From positions 1 through 12,056 of the forward strand of contig NW_021826538.1 of the NCBI RefSeq assembly GCF_006345805.1: a DNA stretch of 12,056 nucleotides, written 5' to 3'. Below are positions 1 through 12,056 of the stretch, in pieces. The stretch is from Octopus sinensis. Taxonomy: Eukaryota. The notes under the pieces are model-generated. The model was given only the letters and a program-made list of their open reading frames with translations, searched no databases and was not told where the DNA came from. The stretch's first letter is position 1; every line of letters begins with the position of its first letter. The position numbers were made by a program, and so were the translations under genes.

Positions 1-914
1 TCAGCCCCACTTGTATATTTCGTCCAGCTCACATTGCAGGTGCTTAGTGTCTTCAGAGTCTGTATTGCCTGTGAAACTTTTGTATCATCTGCATAACTGA
101 GATCGTGGCTCTCCGCGGGCGAGGACAGTCTGAGAGGGCCATTATGAACAGTAGTGGTCCCAAAACAGTGCCCTGTGGAAAACACCGCTCACTATTTGCG
201 TGCTAATGGAAGTGGCTGCTACCACCTGACTTCTATTCTTCAGAAAGTCATGAAAACCATTCCCTAGTTTTCCAACTATGCCAAGAACCACAATTGTGAC
301 ATATCATTCCATGATCAACTTTATCGAAGGCCTTTGCAAAGTCGAGATATATGACTTCCACATTTGAGTGGGTGAGCAGTTGTTTCAGCACACCCAGTCA
401 TAGTGCTGCAGGAGCTGAGTTAAGCAGCTTCTTCCTGGTCGGAAACCATGTGGGTGTCAGCAGCAAGTCATTTTCTTCAAGGAAGGTGATAATTAATTTC
501 CTTCTGACTATTCGTTCTCATGACCTTGCTGATGTGTGAGGTCAGAGAGAGATAGGTCTGTAGTTCTTGGCCTCCGCTCTGCTACCTCCTTTATGAATAT
601 GGCATATTTTACCTTCCTTCAGTTTTCCTAGATGTTTGCCAGCTGCAAGGAAGCTCTGAAAAGAGGAAATGCAGTGGTCTTGCTAGGACTCTCTTACATA
701 CTTTTAGGAGGATTGCCGGGAAATCCATCGGGGCCAATGGCTGGAGTCTGTTTCATTTCATCTATAGCCTTTATTAATGTCCTTCCTTTATATCGATGTA
801 ATTTATCGTCGCCGCCTCTGATTCATCCATGCAGTGGAAAAAAGTCAGTTGGATTGCTGATTTGGAAATGCCCAAGGGGTGAGTGAAAACACTCTTGAAT
901 TGTTTATTCAGTAT
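1..914 (-). mobile_element. 5'-truncated, frameshifted CR1/L2-group non-LTR retrotransposon (LINE) fragment, RT region; continues beyond left window edge
   Basis: Colinear with and highly similar to 9413-10316 and to the reverse complement of ~4322-5235. The minus strand encodes YADD (84-95), GTVLGPLLFIMALS and YLDFAKAFD motifs. Several indels break the frame. Similarity stops at ...ttcagtat (914), next to the TA array. Confidence 0.93.
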
Positions 915-992
915 GACATATATTATGCAATATATATATAGATATTATATATATATAATATATAATTATATATATAGGTTATATATTACAAT

Positions 993-1026
<34 letters not shown>

Positions 1027-1236
1027 TATATATGCATATCTTATAATATATATTGTATATGCATATATATATATATAGCATATAATAGATATATTATATG
1101 CATAATATATATATGCATATATTATATATATATATATGCATTTATAAAGATATATTTATATGCATATATATATATATATGCATATATATATATATATGTG
1201 CAGATATATATATATATATATATGCATATATATATA

Positions 1237-1270
<34 letters not shown>

Positions 1271-1487
1271 CATATATATATATGCATAATATATATATAT
1301 GCATATAAATATATATTATATGCATATATATATGCATATATATATATCTGCATATATATATGCATATATATATATATTGCATATATATATAGCATGCATG
1401 GATATATAATATGCATATATATGTATATATATATATGCATATATATATATATGCATATATATGCATATATATGATATATATATATGC

Positions 1488-1520
<33 letters not shown>

Positions 1521-1841
1521 ATTGCATATATAATATATATATGCAATATATATATATATATGCTAATATATATATATATTATACTATATATATGCTTATA
1601 TATATATAATATATTATATATGCTTATATATATATATATCTATATGCTATATAATATATTATATATATATATATATATGCTATATATTATATATATATAT
1701 AATATATAATATATATGGATAATATATATATATATATGTATATATGCTTCTCTATATATATCTATATATGCTTATATATATATATATATATTGCTTATAT
1801 ATATATATATATATATATGCTTATATATATATATATATATA
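915..1841. repeat. Compound (TA)n microsatellite with ATGCAT interruptions (left/middle) and ATGCTT/ATGCTA interruptions (right, from ~1560)
   Basis: Read directly from the sequence; the ORFs here are Y/I repeats. Confidence 0.97.
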
Positions 1842-2862
1842 CTTGATTTAAGCAGCAGAAAATTACCTGATTATTACTATTACTTGATTATTTATAAATG
1901 ACCCAAATAGGATGTTATATTTCTTTTATATGTCTTTCGTATATATTTAATAATGCACCATTTTTATAAAAGCAATGTTTTTTTAAAAAAAGCAATGTTG
2001 TCAAATTTAGAATGTTTATATAAATTTGTGTATAGCAAAGCATATGTATTTGTAGCATGCGTATCTGTGTATGTGTAGTGAAAGTATGCTTGTGCTTAAG
2101 CACGCATACACACGACGGTATGTATATGTATCAATTCAAACTTGTGTATGTATACTGGCCTCTATAGATGCCAATAACATCGCTACAAGTTCCCCCCACC
2201 CCTCTCTCGTTCCGTTTTCCTCTTTCCCTTCTTTCGTTCCCCCTCCTTGCCTCAGTATATGAGAATTGCTACATAGATGAATTTTAGCTTGCGTGCGAGA
2301 CGGGGTTGCGTGAATATATGTACACTGCTTTTATGTGTATAATTTAGATTATATTCATACGGTCTGTATATGTATGTATGGCGTTTACGCGCGCATCCTT
2401 TTGTGTATGTTGATATATATATGTGGATTTTAATATAAATATGTATGCAGTATTTTAAACAGGTTTAATTTCTATGCATTAATTTGTACTGTCTTCATTA
2501 ACGGCAATAGGTTTTTCCTCGGTTTTTTCCTCGGATTTTATAATTTTTATAATTTTTATAAGTTTTTATATATATATATACATATATTTTTGACCTTTTT
2601 GTTTATCGCTTCGAAGATTGACCGTTTTTTCTAAAGGGCCAATCAAACAAGTCCATTTCTTTTTAAAGGTGTAGCGTTTGTAAGAGTATAGATTGAATTA
2701 ATATATAATGTTCCATTCTAGCAAAAACTGTCTGATAACGGCAACGAGAAACTCAGAGTAACAGATTTTGTTGAATTTTTGCTGCTTAAAATAAAGCATA
2801 ACTCTACCACTGGTATTTGAGTATCTTTTTTCCACCTTGTTCCACATTTATGTGTTTACTCC

Positions 2863-2864
<2 letters not shown>
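1842..2864 (+). mobile_element. Putative non-autonomous or degenerate Penelope-like-element-derived segment (hammerhead + AATAAA near right end, short inverted copy at left end)
   Basis: Bounded by (TA)n on both sides. HHR-like fold at 2722-2770, AATAAA at 2790-2795, and an imperfect inverted repeat (1838-1864 vs 2774-2800). No coding remnant recognised, and the interior is low complexity, so the left extent is uncertain. Confidence 0.4.
2722..2770 (+). ncRNA. Degenerate minimal type I hammerhead ribozyme motif
   Basis: Stem I CAAAA-A-CTGT (2722-2731) / ACAG-A-TTTTG (2761-2770). Core CTGATAA (2732-2738, G8 replaced by A). Stem II CG-GCAA-CG plus an extra A. GAAA at 2748-2751. Near-palindromic stem III ACTC-A-GAGT. 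GUA triplet, predicted cut after 2760. Confidence 0.6.
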
Positions 2865-2897
<33 letters not shown>

Positions 2898-3039
2898 TTT
2901 TATATATATATATATGCTTATATATATATAACTTATATATATATATGCTTAATATATATATGCATATATATATAGATACTATGCATATATATATCTAGGC
3001 ATATATATATATATATATATATATAGATATATATATGCA

Positions 3040-3093
<54 letters not shown>

Positions 3094-3096
3094 TAT
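2865..3096. repeat. (TA)n microsatellite with ATGCTT then ATGCAT interruptions
   Basis: Read directly from the sequence. Confidence 0.97.
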
Positions 3097-3103
3097 CATA
3101 TTT

Positions 3104-3981
3104 AAAGCCTTCTTTAAATTTGCGAAAGAAACCACCTCGGTACACTGCAAGATTGGCCCACTCTTTGATAAAAGGGCTCTCTAACTGAGGACCCCAAGGG
3201 ATAAGTGAAATACTTAAGGAACAGTAATAAAAGTTGTTCACATCCCCTCTGGGGCACATGCAAATCACATACCCTGAAGTTTTCTTGACCCCACAACACT
3301 CCAAAACCAAACAACAAAAAACACCATCGACCACATAGACATAACAGAGAGGGATGTAATATCTGCCATAGAGAAAATGAGAATAAACTCAGCTGCTGGA
3401 CCAGATGGATTCCCAGGCAGTCCTCCTAGAAACATGCAGCATGCCCTAGCGGGACCACTGAAGAGGCTCTTCAGTGGTTCCTTGGCTAACGGTAAACTGC
3501 CCGGGCGCTAAAAGAAGGCACCATATGCCCTATCCACAAAGGAGGGAGTAGAGCAGAGCCAAAAACTACAGGCCAGTCTCCCTGACGTCACACATAAGTA
3601 AGGTCATGGAACGAATCATCAGAAAAAAAGTGATCACGTTCCTCGAAGAAACTACCGTCTCATGACACACAGCATGGCTTTAGCCAGGAAGAAGCTGCCT
3701 TACGCAGCTGTTACAACACTACGACTGGGTACTGAAACAACTACTGGATCGCTCACAGGTGGATGTGGTATATTTCGACTTTGCGAAGGCCTTTGACAAA
3801 GTCGACCACGGAGTGATATGTCACAAATTACTCAGACTCGGCATAACAGGAAAAGTAGGTGAGTGGATACATGACTTCCTGAAGGACAGAAGCCAGATGG
3901 TTGCAGCCAGTGGAGCCCTATCGGGAAAGACACCAATAGCAAGCGGGGTGCCACAGGGCACAGTCTTGGGACCCTTGCTGT
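3104..3981 (+). mobile_element. Diverged-subfamily CR1/L2-group LINE fragment (linker + N-terminal RT), truncated at both ends
   Basis: Encodes KAFFKFAKETTSVHCKIGPL (3104 on), and VVYFDFAKAFDKVDHG...SGVPQGTVLGPLL (3759-3980). Visibly more diverged from the other three copies than they are from each other. Multiple frameshifts. Ends just before the YADD region. Confidence 0.9.
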
Positions 3982-4478
3982 GTCCCAGAGAGAAAGGCCA
4001 CTGTACACAAGAACAAAATCCCCAGAGAGAGGAAAATTTTAATGAGACGGCGTACAAACATTTCAAATCGCCTAAACAAACAAATTGAAAGCAGTGAAAA
4101 GTCCCGCCTGAAAAGAAAACTGTTGGAAATTGAAAATTGTCTGCAACTCTCCCATGAAAAGGAAAGAGCAGACAAAGAAGCCTGGGCTATAGACAACATA
4201 AAAACTAACCCCAGAGCTTTCTACAGGTATGCCAAAGAAACAGCTACGGTACACTGTAGGATAGGGCCACTGCTTGAAAAGGATGGCACACTCACAGGAA
4301 AACCAATGAGGGTAAGTGAAAAACTGAATGAACAATTCAAGAGTGTTTTCACTCCACCCCTTGGGCATTTCCAAATCAGCAATCAACTGACTTCTTTACC
4401 ACTGCAGATATAAAATCAGGGCGGCGACGATAATTACATCGATATAAAGAAGACGATGTAATAAAGGCTATAGATGAA

Positions 4479-5495
4479 ATGAAAACAAACTCAGCTATTG
4501 GCCCCGATAGATTCCCGGCAATCCTCCTAAAAGTATGTAAGAGAGTCCTAGCAAGACCACTGCAGTTCCTCTTTCAGAGCTTCCTTGCAGCTGGCAAACT
4601 TCCAAGAAAACTGAAGGAAGGTAAAATATGCCCTATTCATAAAGGAGGCAGCAGAGCGGAGGCCAAGGACTACATACCTATCTCTCTAACCTCACACATC
4701 AGCAAGGTCATGGAACGAATAGTCAGAAGGAAACTAATCACATTCTTTGAAGAAAATGACTTGCTGCCTGACACCCAACATGGTTTCCGACCAGGAAGTA
4801 GCTGCTTAACTCAGCTCCTACAGCACTATGACTGGGTGCTGAAACAACTGCTCAACCACTCAAATGTGGAAGTCATATATCTCGACTTCGCAAAGGCCTT
4901 CGATAACATCGATCATGGAATGATATGTCACAAACTGCGTGATCTTGGCATAGTTGGAAAACTAGGAGAATGGCTTCATGTCTTTCTGAAGAATAGAAGT
5001 CAGGTGGTAGCAGCCAATGGGGCCACTTCCATTAGCACGCAAATAGTGAGCGGTGTTCCACAGGGCACTGTTTTGGGACCACTGCTGTTCATAATGGCCC
5101 TCTCAGACATGCCCTCAGCCACGCGGAGAGCCACGATCACAAGTTATGCAGATGATACAAAAGTTTCACAGGCAATACAGAACCCTGAAGACACTAAGCA
5201 CCTGCAACGTGAGCTAGACGAAATATACAAGTGGGCTGAAAAGAATAGCATGCAGTTCAATGCTGAAAAGTTTCAAGCTTTATACTATCAGCATGCAAAA
5301 CTGAATGCAATACCCAATGAATACACTGGACCCGGAGGGATTGCAATCCCAGAGGCAAAATCAGTGCGTGACCTGGGTATTCACATGAGTGATGACGCGA
5401 CCTTTCATGTACATGTTGCTAAACTAACAATGAAATGTAGACGGCTGGCTGGATGGATTCTTAGGACATTTAGAACAGAGAACAAGAAACCATGA
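4479..5495 (+). pseudogene. LINE ORF2 reverse transcriptase domain (uninterrupted 338-aa stretch of a frameshifted ORF2)
   Basis: Motifs PIHKGG, PISLTSHISKVMER, QHGFRPG, YLDFAKAFD, SGVPQGTVLGPLLF and YADD (5145-5156). Frame is broken upstream (~4385-4450) and by a 1-nt deletion near 5475 relative to the minus-strand copy. Confidence 0.93.
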
Positions 5496-6055
5496 TGTAC
5501 CTCTGGAGGACACTTGTCCTAAGCCACTTTGACTATTGCTCTCAGCTATGGTCACCATCCAGTGTCAAGTTGATCACAGAACTTGAGGCGATCCAACGAA
5601 GCTACACGAAGAAGATAGCCTCTGTGCAGAACACGAGCTACTGGGAGAGACTCAAGAGATTAAAGCTCTATTCCCTGGAGCGTAGGCGAGAAAGATATGC
5701 CATAATATATATCTGGAAGATCCTGGAAGGTCTTGTCCCAGACTTTGGCATCGAGAGTCACACAAACGCCAGAACCGGACGCCACTGCGTAGTACCAAGG
5801 ACTCCAAATTTGCCATCAAGATGGAGGACAAGATATTGTGATAGCCTGGGCTTCAGAGGCCCACGGCTCTTCAATATCCTCCCGAAGAACCTGAGGGACC
5901 TGCATGGTGTAGATGCGGATGTCTTTAAAGTAGGACTGGATCTCTTCCTGTCAGGTGTCCCAGATGAACCAACTTCACGGCAGGAGGTGCAGATGAGGGC
6001 AGCTGCATCGAACTCTCTCAAGCATCAGATGGCGTTTGCTAAAAAGCATCCGTGA
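5492..6055 (+). pseudogene. LINE ORF2 C-terminal region (after -1 frameshift)
   Basis: LVLSHFDYCSQLWSP...LEAIQR...Y.ERLKRLKLYSLERRRERY is a typical CR1-group ORF2 C-terminus; the homologous peptide is encoded at 8598-9161 on the minus strand. Confidence 0.88.
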
Positions 6056-6079
6056 GGTAAACCCGTGTAGCAAACCAAA

Positions 6080-6101
6080 TGGCGGTGCCCCAGCATGGCC
6101 A
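6080..6101 (+). other. LINE 3' UTR stem-loop (candidate RT recognition element)
   Basis: TGGC-G-GTGC-CCCA-GCAT-G-GCCA, inside a 30-nt block (6074-6103) identical to the reverse complement of 8549-8578. Confidence 0.55.
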
Positions 6102-6141
6102 CAACTCATTAGCTGAAACTGAAAAAATCAAAATCAAAATC

Positions 6142-6411
6142 ATATATATATATGCATATATATATATGTATATATGCATATATATATATATATGCATATA
6201 TATATATATATATATAGCATATATATATATATATGCATATACATATATATATGCATATATATGTATATGCATATATATATGCATATATATATATATATGC
6301 ATATATATGTATATATGCATATATATATGCATATATATATATATATGCATATATATATATATATATATATATATGCATATATATATATATATATGCATAT
6401 ATATATATATA

Positions 6412-6455
<44 letters not shown>

Positions 6456-6470
6456 TATATATATATATAT
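6142..6470. repeat. (TA)n microsatellite with ATGCAT interruptions
   Basis: Read directly from the sequence. Confidence 0.97.
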
Positions 6471-6548
6471 AATATTAGTTATCGCCATACTAATATGGCA
6501 TTCTTATATAAATAAGAATAAAGCTGACCGCTTATTAGCTCCATGAGG
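6471..6548 (-). repeat. 78-bp inverted partial copy of the 363-bp unit
   Basis: Reverse complement of 6704-6781 with one mismatch (TTCTTATATAAAT vs TTCTTATAAAAAT). Confidence 0.95.
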
Positions 6549-6569
6549 CGACGCCTATGGTTTGGCTAC

Positions 6570-6611
6570 GCTGCATTGAAAAGGGGCAATACCCCGAAAC
6601 GCGTCTGTAGC
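6570..6611 (+). ncRNA. Minimal type I hammerhead ribozyme, U3-A8 core variant (copy 1)
   Basis: GCTGCA (stem I) TTGAAAA (core) GGGG-CAATA-CCCC (stem II) GAAA CGCG TC | TGTAGC (stem I, 6 bp incl. one G-U). Predicted cut after C6605. Confidence 0.85.
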
Positions 6612-6932
6612 TGCCGGCCATGTAGTGTGGAGCGACTGACCTCCCTTGTTCAAAGGTTATATGGATACAGTTTGTGTATCAAATAGCTAACTTAAGGCGA
6701 TGACCTCATGGAGCTAATAAGCGGTCAGCTTTATTCTTATTTTTATAAGAATGCCATATTAGTATGGCGATAACTAATATTTTCCGGGAACGCTGCCGTT
6801 GTTCTCTTTTAGAGAGACTTAGTAATTTTAATATTTCTATTATTGAAAACAAGTGGATGTATTCCACCGAAGCTAGGTAAATAAAACCTTTGAACAGAGA
6901 TTGTAGGAAGCGACACCTACTGGTTTGGCTAC

Positions 6933-6974
6933 GCTGCATTGAAAAGGGGCAATACCCCGAAACGCGTCTGTAGC
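6933..6974 (+). ncRNA. Minimal type I hammerhead ribozyme, U3-A8 variant (copy 2)
   Basis: Identical 42-nt motif, 363 nt after copy 1; predicted cut after C6968. Confidence 0.85.
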
Positions 6975-7295
6975 CGCCGGCCAAGTAGTGTGGAGCGACT
7001 GACCTCCCTTGTTCAAAGGTTATATGGATACAGTTTGTGTATCAAATAGCTAACTTAAGGCGATGGCCTCATGGAGCTAATAAGCGGTCAGCTTTATTCT
7101 TATTTTTATAAGAATGCCATATTAGTATGGCGATAACAAATATTTTCCGGGAACGCTACCGTTGTTCTCTTTTAGAGAGACTTAGTAATTTTAATATTTC
7201 TATTATTGAAAACAAGTGGATGTATTCCACCGAAGCTAGGTAAATAAAACCTTTCAACAGAGATTGTCGGAAGCGACACCTACTGGTTTGGCTAC

Positions 7296-7337
7296 GCTGC
7301 ATTGAAAAGGGGCAATACCCCGAAACGCGTCTGTAGC
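7296..7337 (+). ncRNA. Minimal type I hammerhead ribozyme, U3-A8 variant (copy 3)
   Basis: Identical 42-nt motif, 363 nt after copy 2; predicted cut after C7331. Confidence 0.85.
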
Positions 7338-7658
7338 TGCCGGCCAAGTAGTGTGGAGCGACTGACCTCCCTTGTTCAAAGGTTATATGGATACAGTTTG
7401 TGTATCAAATAGCTAACTTAAGGCGATGACCTCATGGAGCTAATAAGCGGTCAGCTTTATTCTTATTTTTATAAGAATGCCATATTAGTATGGCGATAAC
7501 TAATATTTTCCGGGAACGCTGCCGTTGTTCTCTTTTAGAGAGACTTAGTAATTTTAATATTTCTATTATTGAAAACAAGTGGATGTATTCCACCGAAGCT
7601 AGGTAAATAAAACCTTTGAACAGAGATTGTAGGAAGCGACACCTACTGGTTTGGCTAC

Positions 7659-7700
7659 GCTGCATTGAAAAGGGGCAATACCCCGAAACGCGTCTGTAGC
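7659..7700 (+). ncRNA. Minimal type I hammerhead ribozyme, U3-A8 variant (copy 4)
   Basis: Identical 42-nt motif, 363 nt after copy 3; predicted cut after C7694. Confidence 0.85.
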
Positions 7701-7926
7701 TGCCGGCCAAGTAGTGTGGAGTGACTGACCTCCCTTGTTCAAAGGTTATATGGATACAGTTTGGTATCAATAGCTAACTTAAGGCGATGGCCTCATGGAG
7801 CTAATAAGCGGTCAGCTTTATTCTTATTTTTATAAGAATGCCATATTAGTATGGCGATAACTATTATTTTCCAGGAACGCAGCCGCTGTTCTCTTTTAGA
7901 GAGACTTAGTTATTTTAATATTTCTA

Positions 7927-7961
7927 ATATATTATATATATATGTATATATATAATGTATA

Positions 7962-8020
<59 letters not shown>

Positions 8021-8429
8021 GCATATATATATATGTATATATATATGTATATATATATAAACATGTATATATATGCATATATATATATATATGTATATAT
8101 ATGCATATATATATATATGTATATATATATGCATATATATATATATATGTATATATATATGCCTATATATATATATATATGTATATATATATGCATATAT
8201 ATATATATGTATATATATATGCATATATTATATATATGCATATATATATATATGCATTTATATATATATAATGCATATATATATATATGCATATATATAC
8301 ATATATATATATATTATATGCATATATATATATATTATGCATATATTATATATATATATATATATTATATATATATATATATATTATATATGCATATATA
8401 TATATATATGCATATATATATATATATGC

Positions 8430-8469
<40 letters not shown>

Positions 8470-8511
8470 GCATATATATATATATGCTATATATATATTT
8501 ATGCATATATA
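7927..8511. repeat. (TA)n microsatellite with ATGCAT/ATGTAT interruptions
   Basis: Read directly from the sequence. Confidence 0.97.
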
Positions 8512-8597
8512 TTGATTGATTGATTGATTCTAGTTTCAGCTCATGAGCTGTGGCCATGCTGGGGCACCGCCATTTGGTGTTGCTACTTGGTTTCACT

Positions 8598-11574
8598 TCA
8601 TGAAGGCTTTCTAGCAACTTCTATTTGGTGCATGAGAGAGTTCGATGCAGCTGCCCTCATCTGCTCCTCCTGCCGTGAAGTTGGTTCATCTGGGACACCT
8701 GACAGGAAGGGATCCAGCTTCATTTCAAAGACATCTGCATCCACCCCATGCAGGTCTCTCAGGTTCTTCGGGATGATATTGAAGAGCTGTGGGCCTCGGA
8801 AGCCCAGGCTATCACAGAATCTTGTCTTACATATTGATGGCAAGTTTGGAGTCGTAGGCACCACTTAGTGGCGCCCAGTTCTGTCATTTGCGTAACTCTC
8901 GATGCCAAAGTACAGGACACTTCCCTCCAGGATCTTCCAGATGTATATTATGGCATATCTTTACCGCCTACGCTCCAGGGAATATAGTTTTAATCTCTTG
9001 AGTCTTTCCCAGTAGCTAACATTCTGCATAGAGGCTATCTTCTTCGTGTAGCTACGTTGGATCGCCTCGAACTCTGTGATCAACTTGACACTGGATGGTG
9101 ACCATAACTGAGAGCAGTAGTCAAAGTGGCTTAGGACAACTGTCCTCCAGAGGACCAACATGGTTTCTTTTTCTCTTGTTGTAAAGGTTCTGAGGATTCA
9201 TCCGGCCAGTCGTCTACATTTCATTGCCAATTTAGCAACATGTACACGAAAGGTCGCGTCATCACTCATGTAACTAACTAGGTCACGCACTGATTGTGCC
9301 TCTGGGATTGCTATTCCCCGGGTCCAGTGTCATTGGGTATTGCATTTAGTTTTGCATGCTGATAGTATAAAGCTTGAAACTTTTCAGCATTGAACTGCAT
9401 GCTATTCTTTTCGGCCCACTTGTATATTTTGTCTAGCTCACATTGCAGGTGTTTAGTGTCCTCAGGGTTCTGTATTGCCTGTGAAACTTTTGTATCATCT
9501 GCATAACTTGTGATCGTGCTCTCTCTGCGTGGTTGAGGGCATGTCTGAGAGGGCCATTATGAACAGTAGTGGTCCCAGAACAGTGCCCTGCGGAACACCG
9601 CTCATTATGCGTGTTAATGGAAGTGGCCCCATTGGCCACTACCACCTGACTTCTATCTTTCAGAAAGTCATGAAGCCATTCTCCTAGTTTTCCAACTATG
9701 TGGGATCACGCAATTTGTGACATATTTCCATGATCGACTTTATCAAAGGCCTTTGCAAAGTCGAGATATATCACTTCCACATTTGAGTGGTTGAGCAGCC
9801 GTTTCAGCACCCAGTCATAGTGTTGTAGGAGCTGAGTTAAACAGCTTCTCCTGGTCGGAAACCATGTTGGGTGTCGGGCAGCAAGTCATTTTCTTCAAGG
9901 AAGGTGATCAGCTTCCTTCTGACTATTCGTTCCATGACCTTGCTGGTGTGTGAGGTCAGAGAGATAGGTCTATAGTTCTTGGCTTCCGCTCTGCTACCTC
10001 CTTTATGAATGGGGCATATTTTACCTTCCTTCAGTTTTCTTGGGAGTTTGCCAGCTCTGAAAGAGGAACTGCAGTTGTCTTGCTAGGACTCTCTTACATG
10101 CTTTTAGGAGGATTGCCTGGAATCCATCGGGGCCAGTAGCTGAGTCTGTTTTCATTTCATCTATAGCCTTGATTACATCGTCTTCCTTTATATCGATGTA
10201 ATTTACAGTCGCCGACTCTGATTTCATATCTGCAGTGGTAAAAAAGTCAGTTGGATTGGTGATTTGGAGATGCCCAAGGGGTGGAGTGAAAACACTCTTG
10301 AATTGCTCATTCAGTATTTCACTTACGCTCATTGGATTTCCTGTAAGTGTGCCATCCTTTTCGAGGAGTGGCCCTATTCTACAGTGCACCGTAGCTGTTT
10401 CTTTGGCATACCTGTAGAAAGCTCTGGGGTTAGATTTTATGTTGTCTATAGCCCAGGCTTCTTTGTCTGCTCTTTCCTTTACATGGGAGAGTTGCAGACA
10501 TTTTTCGATTTCCAACAGTTTTATTTTTAGGCGGGACTTTTCACTGCTTTCAATTTGTTTGTTTAGGCGATTTGAAAATTTTGTACGCCGTCTCATTAAA
10601 ATTTTCCTCTCTCTGGGGATTTTGTTCTTGTGTACAGTGGCCTTTCTCTCTGGGACACATTTGTAGCATATGGCTTGCATTACAGACATGAATTGTTAAA
10701 ATTTCACGTCGATGTCTGGCGAGGAGAGACATTTAGGCCAGTTTTGTTTGAGGATCTCTTTCTCAATTTGTTTCCAGTTTGCCTTATGGTAGTTCAAGCT
10801 GGAAAGATTCTGGGGGTTTCTTGTAGGCTGCAAGTCCGTGCTCTCTTTTGGCCCGTACATGGTCAGCTCTATCATGTTGTGATCCGAGAGTAGTGTCGGT
10901 GTCACTTTCACATTATGGATGAGATCCATGTCATTTGTGAAGCAGAGATCCAGTGTGTTACCTGTCCTGGTTGGTTGGAGTATTACCTGCTCCATGTACA
11001 GGGTGTTGATGAGGTTCAGGAGGAACGTCGCCTATCCTCGTTCACATCTTGTCATTTCTGGGAGAGAAAGGCCCTCGGGCCATCTGACATTGGGCAGGTT
11101 GAAGTCTTCCATAAGAAGTACACTTATGTGTTGTTCTTATGTGGTTAGAACTTCTTCTATTTTTATAAGGCACTCTTCAAACTTGCCCACATGGCTTGGG
11201 GCATCTGGAGGGCGATATGTAGCACACACAACTACATCAAGTTGCCTAATACGTACAATTAGTGTGTTACACACCGAGTTTGAGTATGACAAGAGGACCT
11301 GGGGTGTGAGGTCCTCACGGATGTACATAGCAACACCTCCATGACTCCTTTCTTTCCTGTCAGTCCGTAGTACAGCATACTGTGGTATGTGTAACTCCGC
11401 ATCTGCTATATCCGGTTTCAGGTGCGTTTCCGTTAGTGCTATGCATAGGGCTTGATTGCATGCAACAACATCTCTCAGGAACGGGATTTTTGTCCTGTTA
11501 CTGAGTGTTTGCAGTCCTCTGATGTTCAGTAGGAGCATCGAGGTGAGGTGTACGTTGTTGCCGGTGGTGTCCAT
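8598..11574 (-). pseudogene. LINE ORF2 (APE endonuclease + reverse transcriptase), multiple frameshifts and stops
   Basis: APE motifs LLNIRGL, IALTETHL, RTDR...GGVAMY, YRPP, DFN, PTR.GNTLDL and SDHNMI (~11538-10863). YADD at 9494-9505. C-terminus ...AAASNSL at ~8598-8650. Start placed at MDTTG (ATG 11574-11572), which is uncertain. Confidence 0.92.
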
Positions 11575-11689
11575 CCTGGGTCTGTTTGCTGTGGTGGTGG
11601 TCTGGTATATAGTGGGTAGTCCCATCTGCGGGCTTGGGTTTGATGAAGCCAGGTCAGCTGCTGTACAATCTTTTGTGCCATGCACAAAT

Positions 11690-12056
11690 AGATTGTTGCT
11701 CAGCAGCTTGCCCTTTCGACAACATCATGTTGGTGGTTTGTGGCACGCACAACATCTGCGTACCTCCGCTTTGGGGCAAGTGGTGCGTGGTCCATCCCTT
11801 TTCCCTGTGTTGATGGTTTGTCCATCTGCCTCGTGTCTCTGTGGCAGGGTCCCCGATGTGCAAAGCGGCCCTGCACCTTCCTTTCCATGCCAGCAGGAAC
11901 CTCTCAGTTAGAACCTACACACCCGTGTGCGCTGTTTGTTCCATCTTTTGCGGTTCCACTTCTATTCCTGGTTTTTTCACCCTTTGGTCCTGCTTGAGCT
12001 TTTCCTTTAGCTCTACCACCCTTCTTTTAGTTCTTCCTCCTCCTCCTCTACCTCAT
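11690..12056 (-). pseudogene. Possible degenerate LINE ORF1 remnant
   Basis: Lies upstream of ORF2. Shows a Glu/Lys-rich stretch (EVEEEEEELKE..VVELKEKLK) and a broken Cys/His motif VCRF*LRGSCWHG...RFAH. Needs frameshifts and a stop to assemble. Confidence 0.35.

Follow-up and report, generated by a model that had tools for sequence, protein, structure and literature searches.

Metazoan retrozymes of the non-LTR type are defined as head-to-tail DNA repeats of ~150-450 bp, non-coding and with a GC content below 45-50%, that carry a type I hammerhead ribozyme in each copy (PMC7229834). The tandem retrozymes of animals were defined in 2020 as units of 170-400 nucleotides (nt) that are low in GC and highly self-paired (Cervera & de la Pena 2020, PMC7229834), and their RNA circles are closed by a tRNA ligase such as RtcB and not by the ribozyme (PMC7229834). 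Here we describe a tandem array of 363-nt units in a 12,056-nt stretch of DNA from Octopus sinensis (contig NW_021826538.1, positions 1 to 12,056 of the forward strand; hereafter the window, meaning the whole stretch that was analysed). Judging from its sequence, the array is best explained as a non-autonomous, animal-type retrozyme that lacks long terminal repeats (LTRs) and encodes a type I hammerhead on the + strand of each unit, and this hammerhead retrozyme is probably functional or was so until recently.

Several described systems resemble this locus in part. The canonical metazoan type I hammerhead combines a helix I of 6 bp, a helix II of 4 bp and a helix III of 1-2 bp with a palindromic loop of 2-4 nt, and in tandem repeats its active form is the dimer (Cervera & de la Pena 2014, PMC4209133). 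In particular, newt satellite 2 and the axolotl HHR_Amex1 (PMC7229834) are repeats of ~330-350 nt whose motif has a helix III of 1 bp capped by a palindromic tetraloop, is weak on its own and efficient as a dimer, and yields circles closed by tRNA ligase. The retrozymes of Mytilus galloprovincialis (~350-400 nt) and Acropora millepora (220-240 nt) are short, low-GC tandems with one type I hammerhead per unit, highly self-paired monomers and no LTR, primer-binding site (PBS), polypurine tract (PPT) or open reading frame (ORF); as a rule, helix III is more stable in their hammerheads and the single motif is what cleaves (PMC7229834). As to the catalytic core, natural hammerheads in which U3-A8 replaces the C3-G8 pair by covariation were reported by Perreault et al. 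2011 (PMC3088659), who describe such cores as active in vitro and credit this activity to Przybilski & Hammann 2007. Around 1,300 minimal hammerheads with the U3-A8 core occur in Schistosoma mansoni, where they are linked to Cercyon, a group of Penelope-like elements (PLEs), and these motifs have a helix II of 7-8 bp and a helix I of 4-5 bp and stand mostly single in the PLE pseudo-LTRs (pLTRs) (Cervera & de la Pena 2014, PMC4209133). For cephalopods, a search of the literature on hammerheads and retrozymes found nothing beyond the 235 Hammerhead_1 Rfam matches counted in the giant squid genome paper, and a tandem retrozyme that joins the canonical architecture to a U3-A8 core is not described in the searchable literature.

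The repeat unit and its hammerhead motif

Tandem Repeats Finder (TRF) reports a single array at 6548-7930, with a period of 363 nt, 3.8 copies, 97% matches, 0% indels and a score of 2633. An exact string search places the 42-nt string GCTGCATTGAAAAGGGGCAATACCCCGAAACGCGTCTGTAGC in exactly four + strand copies that follow each other at a spacing of exactly 363 nt (Table 1), as an initial annotation of the window had proposed; allowing up to three mismatches adds no copy in the window, and 200 shuffles contain no match at all. The same annotation had read the motif as a hammerhead with stems I and II, a UUGAAAA core, a GAAA and a GUC triplet, and had predicted cleavage after each GUC. Reading of the sequence and folding agree with it on all of these elements and on the four cut positions.

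The anatomy of the motif is given here for copy 2, where helix I, helix II and an outer helix all form in the minimum free energy (MFE) structure of 6926-6986. Helix I (GCUGCA/UGUAGC) has 6 bp including one G-U, and the open ends at this helix make the motif type I. Beyond an internal loop with UAC on its 5' side and a single C or U on its 3' side, helix I is extended by the outer helix of 3+5 bp (UGGUU…GGC/GCC-GGCCA). The first core strand reads U3 U4 G5 A6 A7 A8 A9 (UUGAAAA) and leads into a helix II of 4 bp (GGGG/CCCC) with G10.1-C11.1 as the closing pair and CAAUA as the loop. Then come the second core strand, G12 A13 A14, a helix III of 1 bp (A15.1-U16.1) closing the palindrome CGCG, and the cleavage site GUC, with C17 followed by U1.1. 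The invariant residues of hammerheads are all present (U4 G5 A6 A9, G10.1-C11.1, G12 A13 A14, A15.1-U16.1, C17), C3 and G8 excepted. These two positions are jointly changed to U3 and A8, which keeps the Watson-Crick pairing potential and not the base identity.

Part of the initial interpretation has to be revised. The double change may well be compensatory, as proposed; the U3-A8 pairing potential is kept, and the covariation is known in nature (PMC3088659, PMC4209133). It is no novelty, the variant having already been published in 2011 (PMC3088659) and 2014 (PMC4209133). The annotation had also brought up the 'minimal' type I hammerheads of PLEs and tandem retrozymes. The motif is not of the minimal PLE type; its predicted helices follow the canonical metazoan type I layout, in which helix III is down to 1 bp and closes a palindromic tetraloop. 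Three features had gone unmentioned, namely the CGCG closed by helix III, the extension of helix I past the internal loop and an inverted unit at 6471-6548.

The array as a whole has the sequence-level properties of retrozymes, being a 363-nt head-to-tail repeat with one motif per unit, a low GC content (40.5-41% per unit), no coding capacity and a self-paired monomer. No LTR, PBS or PPT is found in the unit, and its ORFs are short only; the longest (112 aa, on the minus strand and running across a motif) is without a relative in a collection of 5.8 billion proteins. ARAGORN finds nothing that would point to a tRNA-like or Pol III origin of the unit.

In layout the array resembles the newt and axolotl repeats, which share the 1-bp helix III and the palindromic tetraloop and are only slightly shorter. 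It is a likeness of layout, and the core is U3-A8 here and C3-G8 there, in a host that is not an amphibian. With the Mytilus and Acropora retrozymes the array shares the short, low-GC, ORF-less tandem organization and the strongly self-paired monomer; it differs from them in the motif, as their hammerheads usually cleave singly and with a more stable helix III. With the Schistosoma motifs and the variants of Perreault and colleagues it shares the U3-A8 change and, in the Schistosoma case, a link to retroelements; unlike the Schistosoma motifs, however, it is canonical, with a helix I of 6 bp plus extension and a helix II of 4 bp, and is present once in each ORF-less tandem unit.

Folding of the RNA is in keeping with these comparisons. 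The 363-nt monomer, taken from cleavage site to cleavage site, has a linear MFE of -115.4 kcal/mol against -86.8 +/- 5.2 for 100 shuffles (z = -5.5). Helices I and II are retained in this fold, and the 5' and 3' ends of the monomer are predicted to be clamped by helix I plus its extension. Folded as a circle, the monomer reaches an MFE of -110.4 kcal/mol with 62-63% of its bases paired. A transcript spanning two motifs (6553-6995, 443 nt) has an unconstrained MFE of -144.4 kcal/mol; enforcing a double hammerhead gives -144.3 and enforcing two single hammerheads gives -125.1, so that the double form is favoured by ~19 kcal/mol. Even in the unconstrained fold the two ACGCGU segments already form a 6-bp helix III and both helices II are kept, and in the double-hammerhead fold the helices I are swapped in a nested structure with no pseudoknot. 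By these models the motif is predicted to be at work in a double hammerhead that neighbouring units form together and not on its own, which is the behaviour described for the newt and axolotl repeats.

Table 1. Coordinates of the array, its hammerheads and the surrounding elements in the window
Feature	Position	Strand	Details
Direct tandem array	6549..7926	+	3.8 units x 363 nt; TRF, alignment, junction print-out
Hammerhead domain 1	6558..6620	+	Exact motif 6570-6611; descriptor match; fold; predicted cleavage after 6605
Hammerhead domain 2	6921..6983	+	Exact motif 6933-6974; descriptor match; predicted cleavage after 6968
Hammerhead domain 3	7284..7346	+	Exact motif 7296-7337; descriptor match; predicted cleavage after 7331
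Hammerhead domain 4	7647..7709	+	Exact motif 7659-7700; descriptor match; predicted cleavage after 7694
Predicted 363-nt monomer RNA	6969..7331	+	Cleavage site to cleavage site; others 6606-6968, 7332-7694
Inverted, 5'-truncated partial unit	6471..6548	-	78 nt, ~unit columns 157-235; repeat search, alignment, blastn
Left (TA)n microsatellite, presumed target tract	6142..6475		TRF period 2, 167 copies
Right (TA)n microsatellite, presumed other half of target tract	7927..8512		TRF period 2, 299 copies
Copies or fragments of a long interspersed nuclear element (LINE) family, at least 4	1-912, 3333-3981, 3979-6141, 8513-11685	-, +, +, -	75-91% mutual identity, blastn

Insertion site and mobilization

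Craig et al. 2021 (PMC8557442) describe insertions of PLEs as marked by tandem copies, by an inverted and 5'-truncated copy upstream and by targeting of (TA)n, and the same combination is present here, with (TA)n on both sides. The arms that pair the inverted piece with the direct units measure 78-79 nt and are 97-99% complementary (6704-6781, 7066-7144, 7430-7507 and 7790-7868). At its truncated end the inverted piece meets the direct array at 6548/6549, and at its unit-3' end it abuts the left (TA)n tract. The direct array is cut at its right end at ~unit position 293, where it meets the right tract. The element is rich in A/T at either outer end (…CTAATATT in the inverted piece; …TTAATATTTCTA in the direct array) and each grades into (TA)n. 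The locus differs from PLE insertions in having no reverse transcriptase (RT) or GIY-YIG ORF, and no 30-40 bp 'tail' is recognized in the array; moreover, the (TA)n targeting of PMC8557442 is described for Naiads, which lack canonical hammerheads.

Taken as a pair, 6471-6548 and 6704-6781 make a 78-bp inverted repeat, 99% complementary, around a 155-nt spacer. A read-through transcript would form a near-perfect long double-stranded RNA hairpin, a possible substrate of ADAR or Dicer. Long (TA)n tracts with TGCA or TGTA interruptions lie at 930-1841 and 2865-3090 in addition to the two that flank the element. A whole-window Rfam scan (E <= 10) returns only microRNA false positives on these tracts, with dozens of sub-threshold low-complexity artefacts (mir-297, mir-3149, mir-1277 and mir-466).

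The insertion anatomy resembles the published insertions of PLEs. It is not exclusive to them, as an insertion by LINE machinery fits as well, the same element being then integrated by target-primed reverse transcription with twin priming and with no PLE. This route is unlikely in our judgement, although several observations favour it. Twin priming by LINEs classically leaves an inverted 5' segment, which the inverted segment at this locus matches. The only RTs of the window are LINE-type. The RT ORF at 4479-5495 scores 8.8e-30 for RVT_1, has LINE-1 ORF2p and R2 as best PDB matches and has its best named relatives in Octopus (64%) and Argonauta (61%), with other proteins at 72-75%, which points to a cephalopod or other mollusc as the probable host; no GIY-YIG was detected among the ORFs of the window. 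Furthermore, two LINE copies terminate at their 3' ends within the (TA)n tract that also holds the element, so that the LINE also uses (TA)n targets. These array-facing copies (6120-6141, 8513-8535) end at the same base (…GCTGAAACT) and continue with a short tail of their own, made of (AAAATC)n for one copy and of (AATC)n for the second, after which (TA)n begins. This arrangement suggests a microsatellite-tailed LINE inserting into (TA)n. The two largest LINE copies form a tail-to-tail inverted pair around the array, ~2.5 kb long and 90% identical, and the LINE ORFs are broken by frameshifts and stops.

Against mobilization by the LINE stands the finding that the 363-nt unit shares no sequence with the 3' end of the neighbouring LINE by blastn; a SINE-like (short interspersed nuclear element) partnership was set aside on the same ground. 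Published evidence also favours PLEs. Cervera & de la Pena 2020 left the mobilizer as 'LINEs or PLEs', which speaks for keeping the LINE in view, whereas the more recent work finds retrozymes together with PLEs in 32/35 species and reports homology between retrozymes and pLTRs, with retrozymes sister to pLTRs (bioRxiv 10.64898/2026.07.22.740005); type I hammerheads and the tandem habit are likewise common to both. The initial annotation had named a PLE as the source of the RT. No such partner lies in the window, and it is by following the literature, not this sequence, that we retain a PLE as the probable mobilizing partner, with moderate confidence.

A retrozyme mobilized in this way would work as follows. 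In a + strand transcript of at least two units, the ACGCGU palindromes of neighbouring units would pair as a 6-bp helix III and the helices I would be swapped, giving a double hammerhead in which each U3-A8 core would cut after its GUC at the positions listed in Table 1. Helix I and its long extension would keep the ends of the monomer adjacent, and a host ligase of the tRNA type (RtcB-like) would close them into highly base-paired circles. An RT supplied in trans, most likely from a PLE, would then copy the multimeric or circular RNA, and priming where a (TA)n tract is broken would produce a tandem insertion with an inverted, 5'-truncated copy. The presence of more than three inserted units requires such a multimeric or circular template, or else DNA-level amplification afterwards. 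For cleavage and ligation, for expression and for the choice of RT, this scheme draws on what has been published on related elements.

Relatives, points of doubt and alternative origins

The classification of the array as a candidate tandem retrozyme, which the initial annotation had put forward, is supported in silico by its layout, unit size, GC content, absence of coding capacity, structured monomer and insertion context. As to relatives, scanning viral contigs and prokaryote genome contigs for the motif, whichever of the two cores was used, returned no match, and a 30-mer from the body of the unit had no match in viral contigs. A metagenome scan with YTGAARAGGGGNNNNNCCCCGAAACGCGTC recovered one other locus, L003 (WNGL01048539.1), which lies on a eukaryotic contig and is not the same repeat. 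It carries an isolated type I hammerhead at 1734-1775 (ACGCAG-CUGAAGA-GGGG-CGAAA-CCCC-GAAACGCGUC-CUGCGU) with the canonical CUGAAGA core and with helices II and III as in the window motif. Its helix I (ACGCAG/CUGCGU) is perfectly paired and differs from that of the window, and homology is unproven. The hammerhead lies ~720 nt downstream of an RT ORF (4-1017) that is not LINE-like by PDB search and whose motifs, FLDD and KPTD…HP, may be Penelope-like. Further downstream, at 2397-2832, there is a 214-nt tandem repeat of 2 copies with 85% matches.

A number of results weigh against a functional retrozyme of the kind proposed. No other copy of the family was retrieved from collections of proteins, metagenomes, viral contigs and prokaryote contigs. 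No PLE is present in the window, where both neighbouring elements are LINEs. That the motif is invariant across the array lacks significance, with 0 substitutions against 2.2 expected for a 46-nt motif and 17 variable columns (P ~0.11). In one unit, a G to C change at 7255 is uncompensated in the predicted long-range helix. The title of Przybilski & Hammann 2007 suggests that the activity of U3-A8 cores depends on context. Finally, none of the Rfam hammerhead families matches at E <= 10, either in a search of 1451 nt of the array or in a 111-nt slice with a single motif.

The last of these results carries little weight because the canonical-core hammerhead of L003, used as a control, also stays far below threshold (23.9 bits on Hammerhead_HH9, for a gathering score of 52); the models do not cover architectures with a short helix III. 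The window motif has the same order of elements as Hammerhead_HH9 and Hammerhead_1 (clan CL00010), and it resembles the HH9 consensus in the UAC-containing internal loop 5' of a 6-bp helix I and in the A-rich loop 2. It differs from both models in a far shorter helix III and in two core positions, and these two core substitutions push it below Rfam detection.

The non-significant invariance bears more directly on the possibility that the array is a dead relic, derived from a retrozyme and now a plain satellite, in which the U3-A8 core has lost useful cleavage activity, and in which the array grew and is kept uniform by DNA-level unequal crossing-over or gene conversion. The four units align cleanly, with ~17 variable columns and none inside the motif. 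A single site separates unit 1 from unit 3, and 6-7 sites set unit 2 apart from either of them (6606-7694); therefore, some DNA-level homogenization of the array is likely in addition. The likeness of units 1 and 3 hints at a higher-order period of two units or at gene conversion within the array. Unit 4, at the edge, has ~8 private changes, and the pattern of all four units fits a homogenization of the interior. Nevertheless, we regard a dead relic as quite unlikely. For a random double change to fall at exactly positions 3 and 8, to be complementary and to leave the rest of the core and three helices intact, the odds are estimated at ~1e-4. In addition, the double hammerhead is essentially the MFE structure of a two-unit transcript, and natural U3-A8 hammerheads are described as active (PMC3088659).

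The units might instead be tandem solo pLTRs left behind by an autonomous PLE and not a separate non-autonomous family. The pLTRs of PLEs carry hammerheads, are found as partial tandems with an inverted truncated copy and use (TA)n targets (PMC4209133, PMC8557442), to which the reported sister relation of retrozymes and pLTRs may be added. Such an origin is nonetheless distinctly improbable, as 3.8 consecutive units follow each other without an RT or GIY-YIG ORF between or beside them, and as the canonical architecture is the one reported for retrozymes and not the minimal PLE variant with its long helix II and short helix I.

How often a motif of this kind would arise by coincidence was assessed with a descriptor that requires at least 5 of 6 pairs in helix I, N3-UGA-N-N8-A in which positions 3 and 8 may form any Watson-Crick pair, a helix II of 4 bp that has G-C as its closing pair and 3-7 nt in its loop, GAAA, and a palindromic loop of 2-6 nt followed by U and H. 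The four sites are its only matches in the window. There were 0 matches in 20 Mb of first-order Markov sequence of array composition, even when the helix I requirement was dropped, and multiplication of the component frequencies gives a factorized estimate of 2.7e-10 per nt, or 2e-7 per 363-nt unit. It is therefore very unlikely that a chance motif falls within a tandem unit of retrozyme size. A satellite with a merely coincidental hammerhead-like motif, for which one could cite the silence of the Rfam models and the ~1.6 such motifs expected per 3-Gb genome under the relaxed descriptor, has a next to negligible probability given the expectation per unit and the coincidence of the motif with four independent retrozyme traits, namely unit size, low GC, a structured monomer and a palindromic helix III leading to a near-MFE double hammerhead.

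Significance for animal retrozymes

A U3-A8 core in a canonical tandem retrozyme is a variation in detail and not in kind, and the existing picture of retrozymes is filled in, not changed, by this locus. If the element is active, it represents a natural compensatory experiment on the catalytic core, in which C3-G8 has become U3-A8 in a canonical retrozyme context, and it would extend ribozyme-made circular RNAs to another animal lineage. The insertion is also unusually clean in its anatomy, with (TA)n, tandem units and an inverted truncated copy, and is of interest for the question of how the RNA of retrozymes returns to DNA.

There are consequences for annotation as well, as elements of this kind escape both the Rfam models and descriptors that insist on CUGANGA, with the result that genome annotations label them as plain satellites. 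Tentatively, and with rather less than even confidence, the array may represent a whole lineage of retrozymes, probably of cephalopods or other molluscs, with a family-wide U3-A8 core, an active double hammerhead and abundant 363-nt circular RNAs. If this is true, the lineage would be invisible to the CUGANGA descriptors and Rfam models of the published censuses, and the counts of animal retrozymes and of ribozyme-made circular RNAs would be systematically underestimated.

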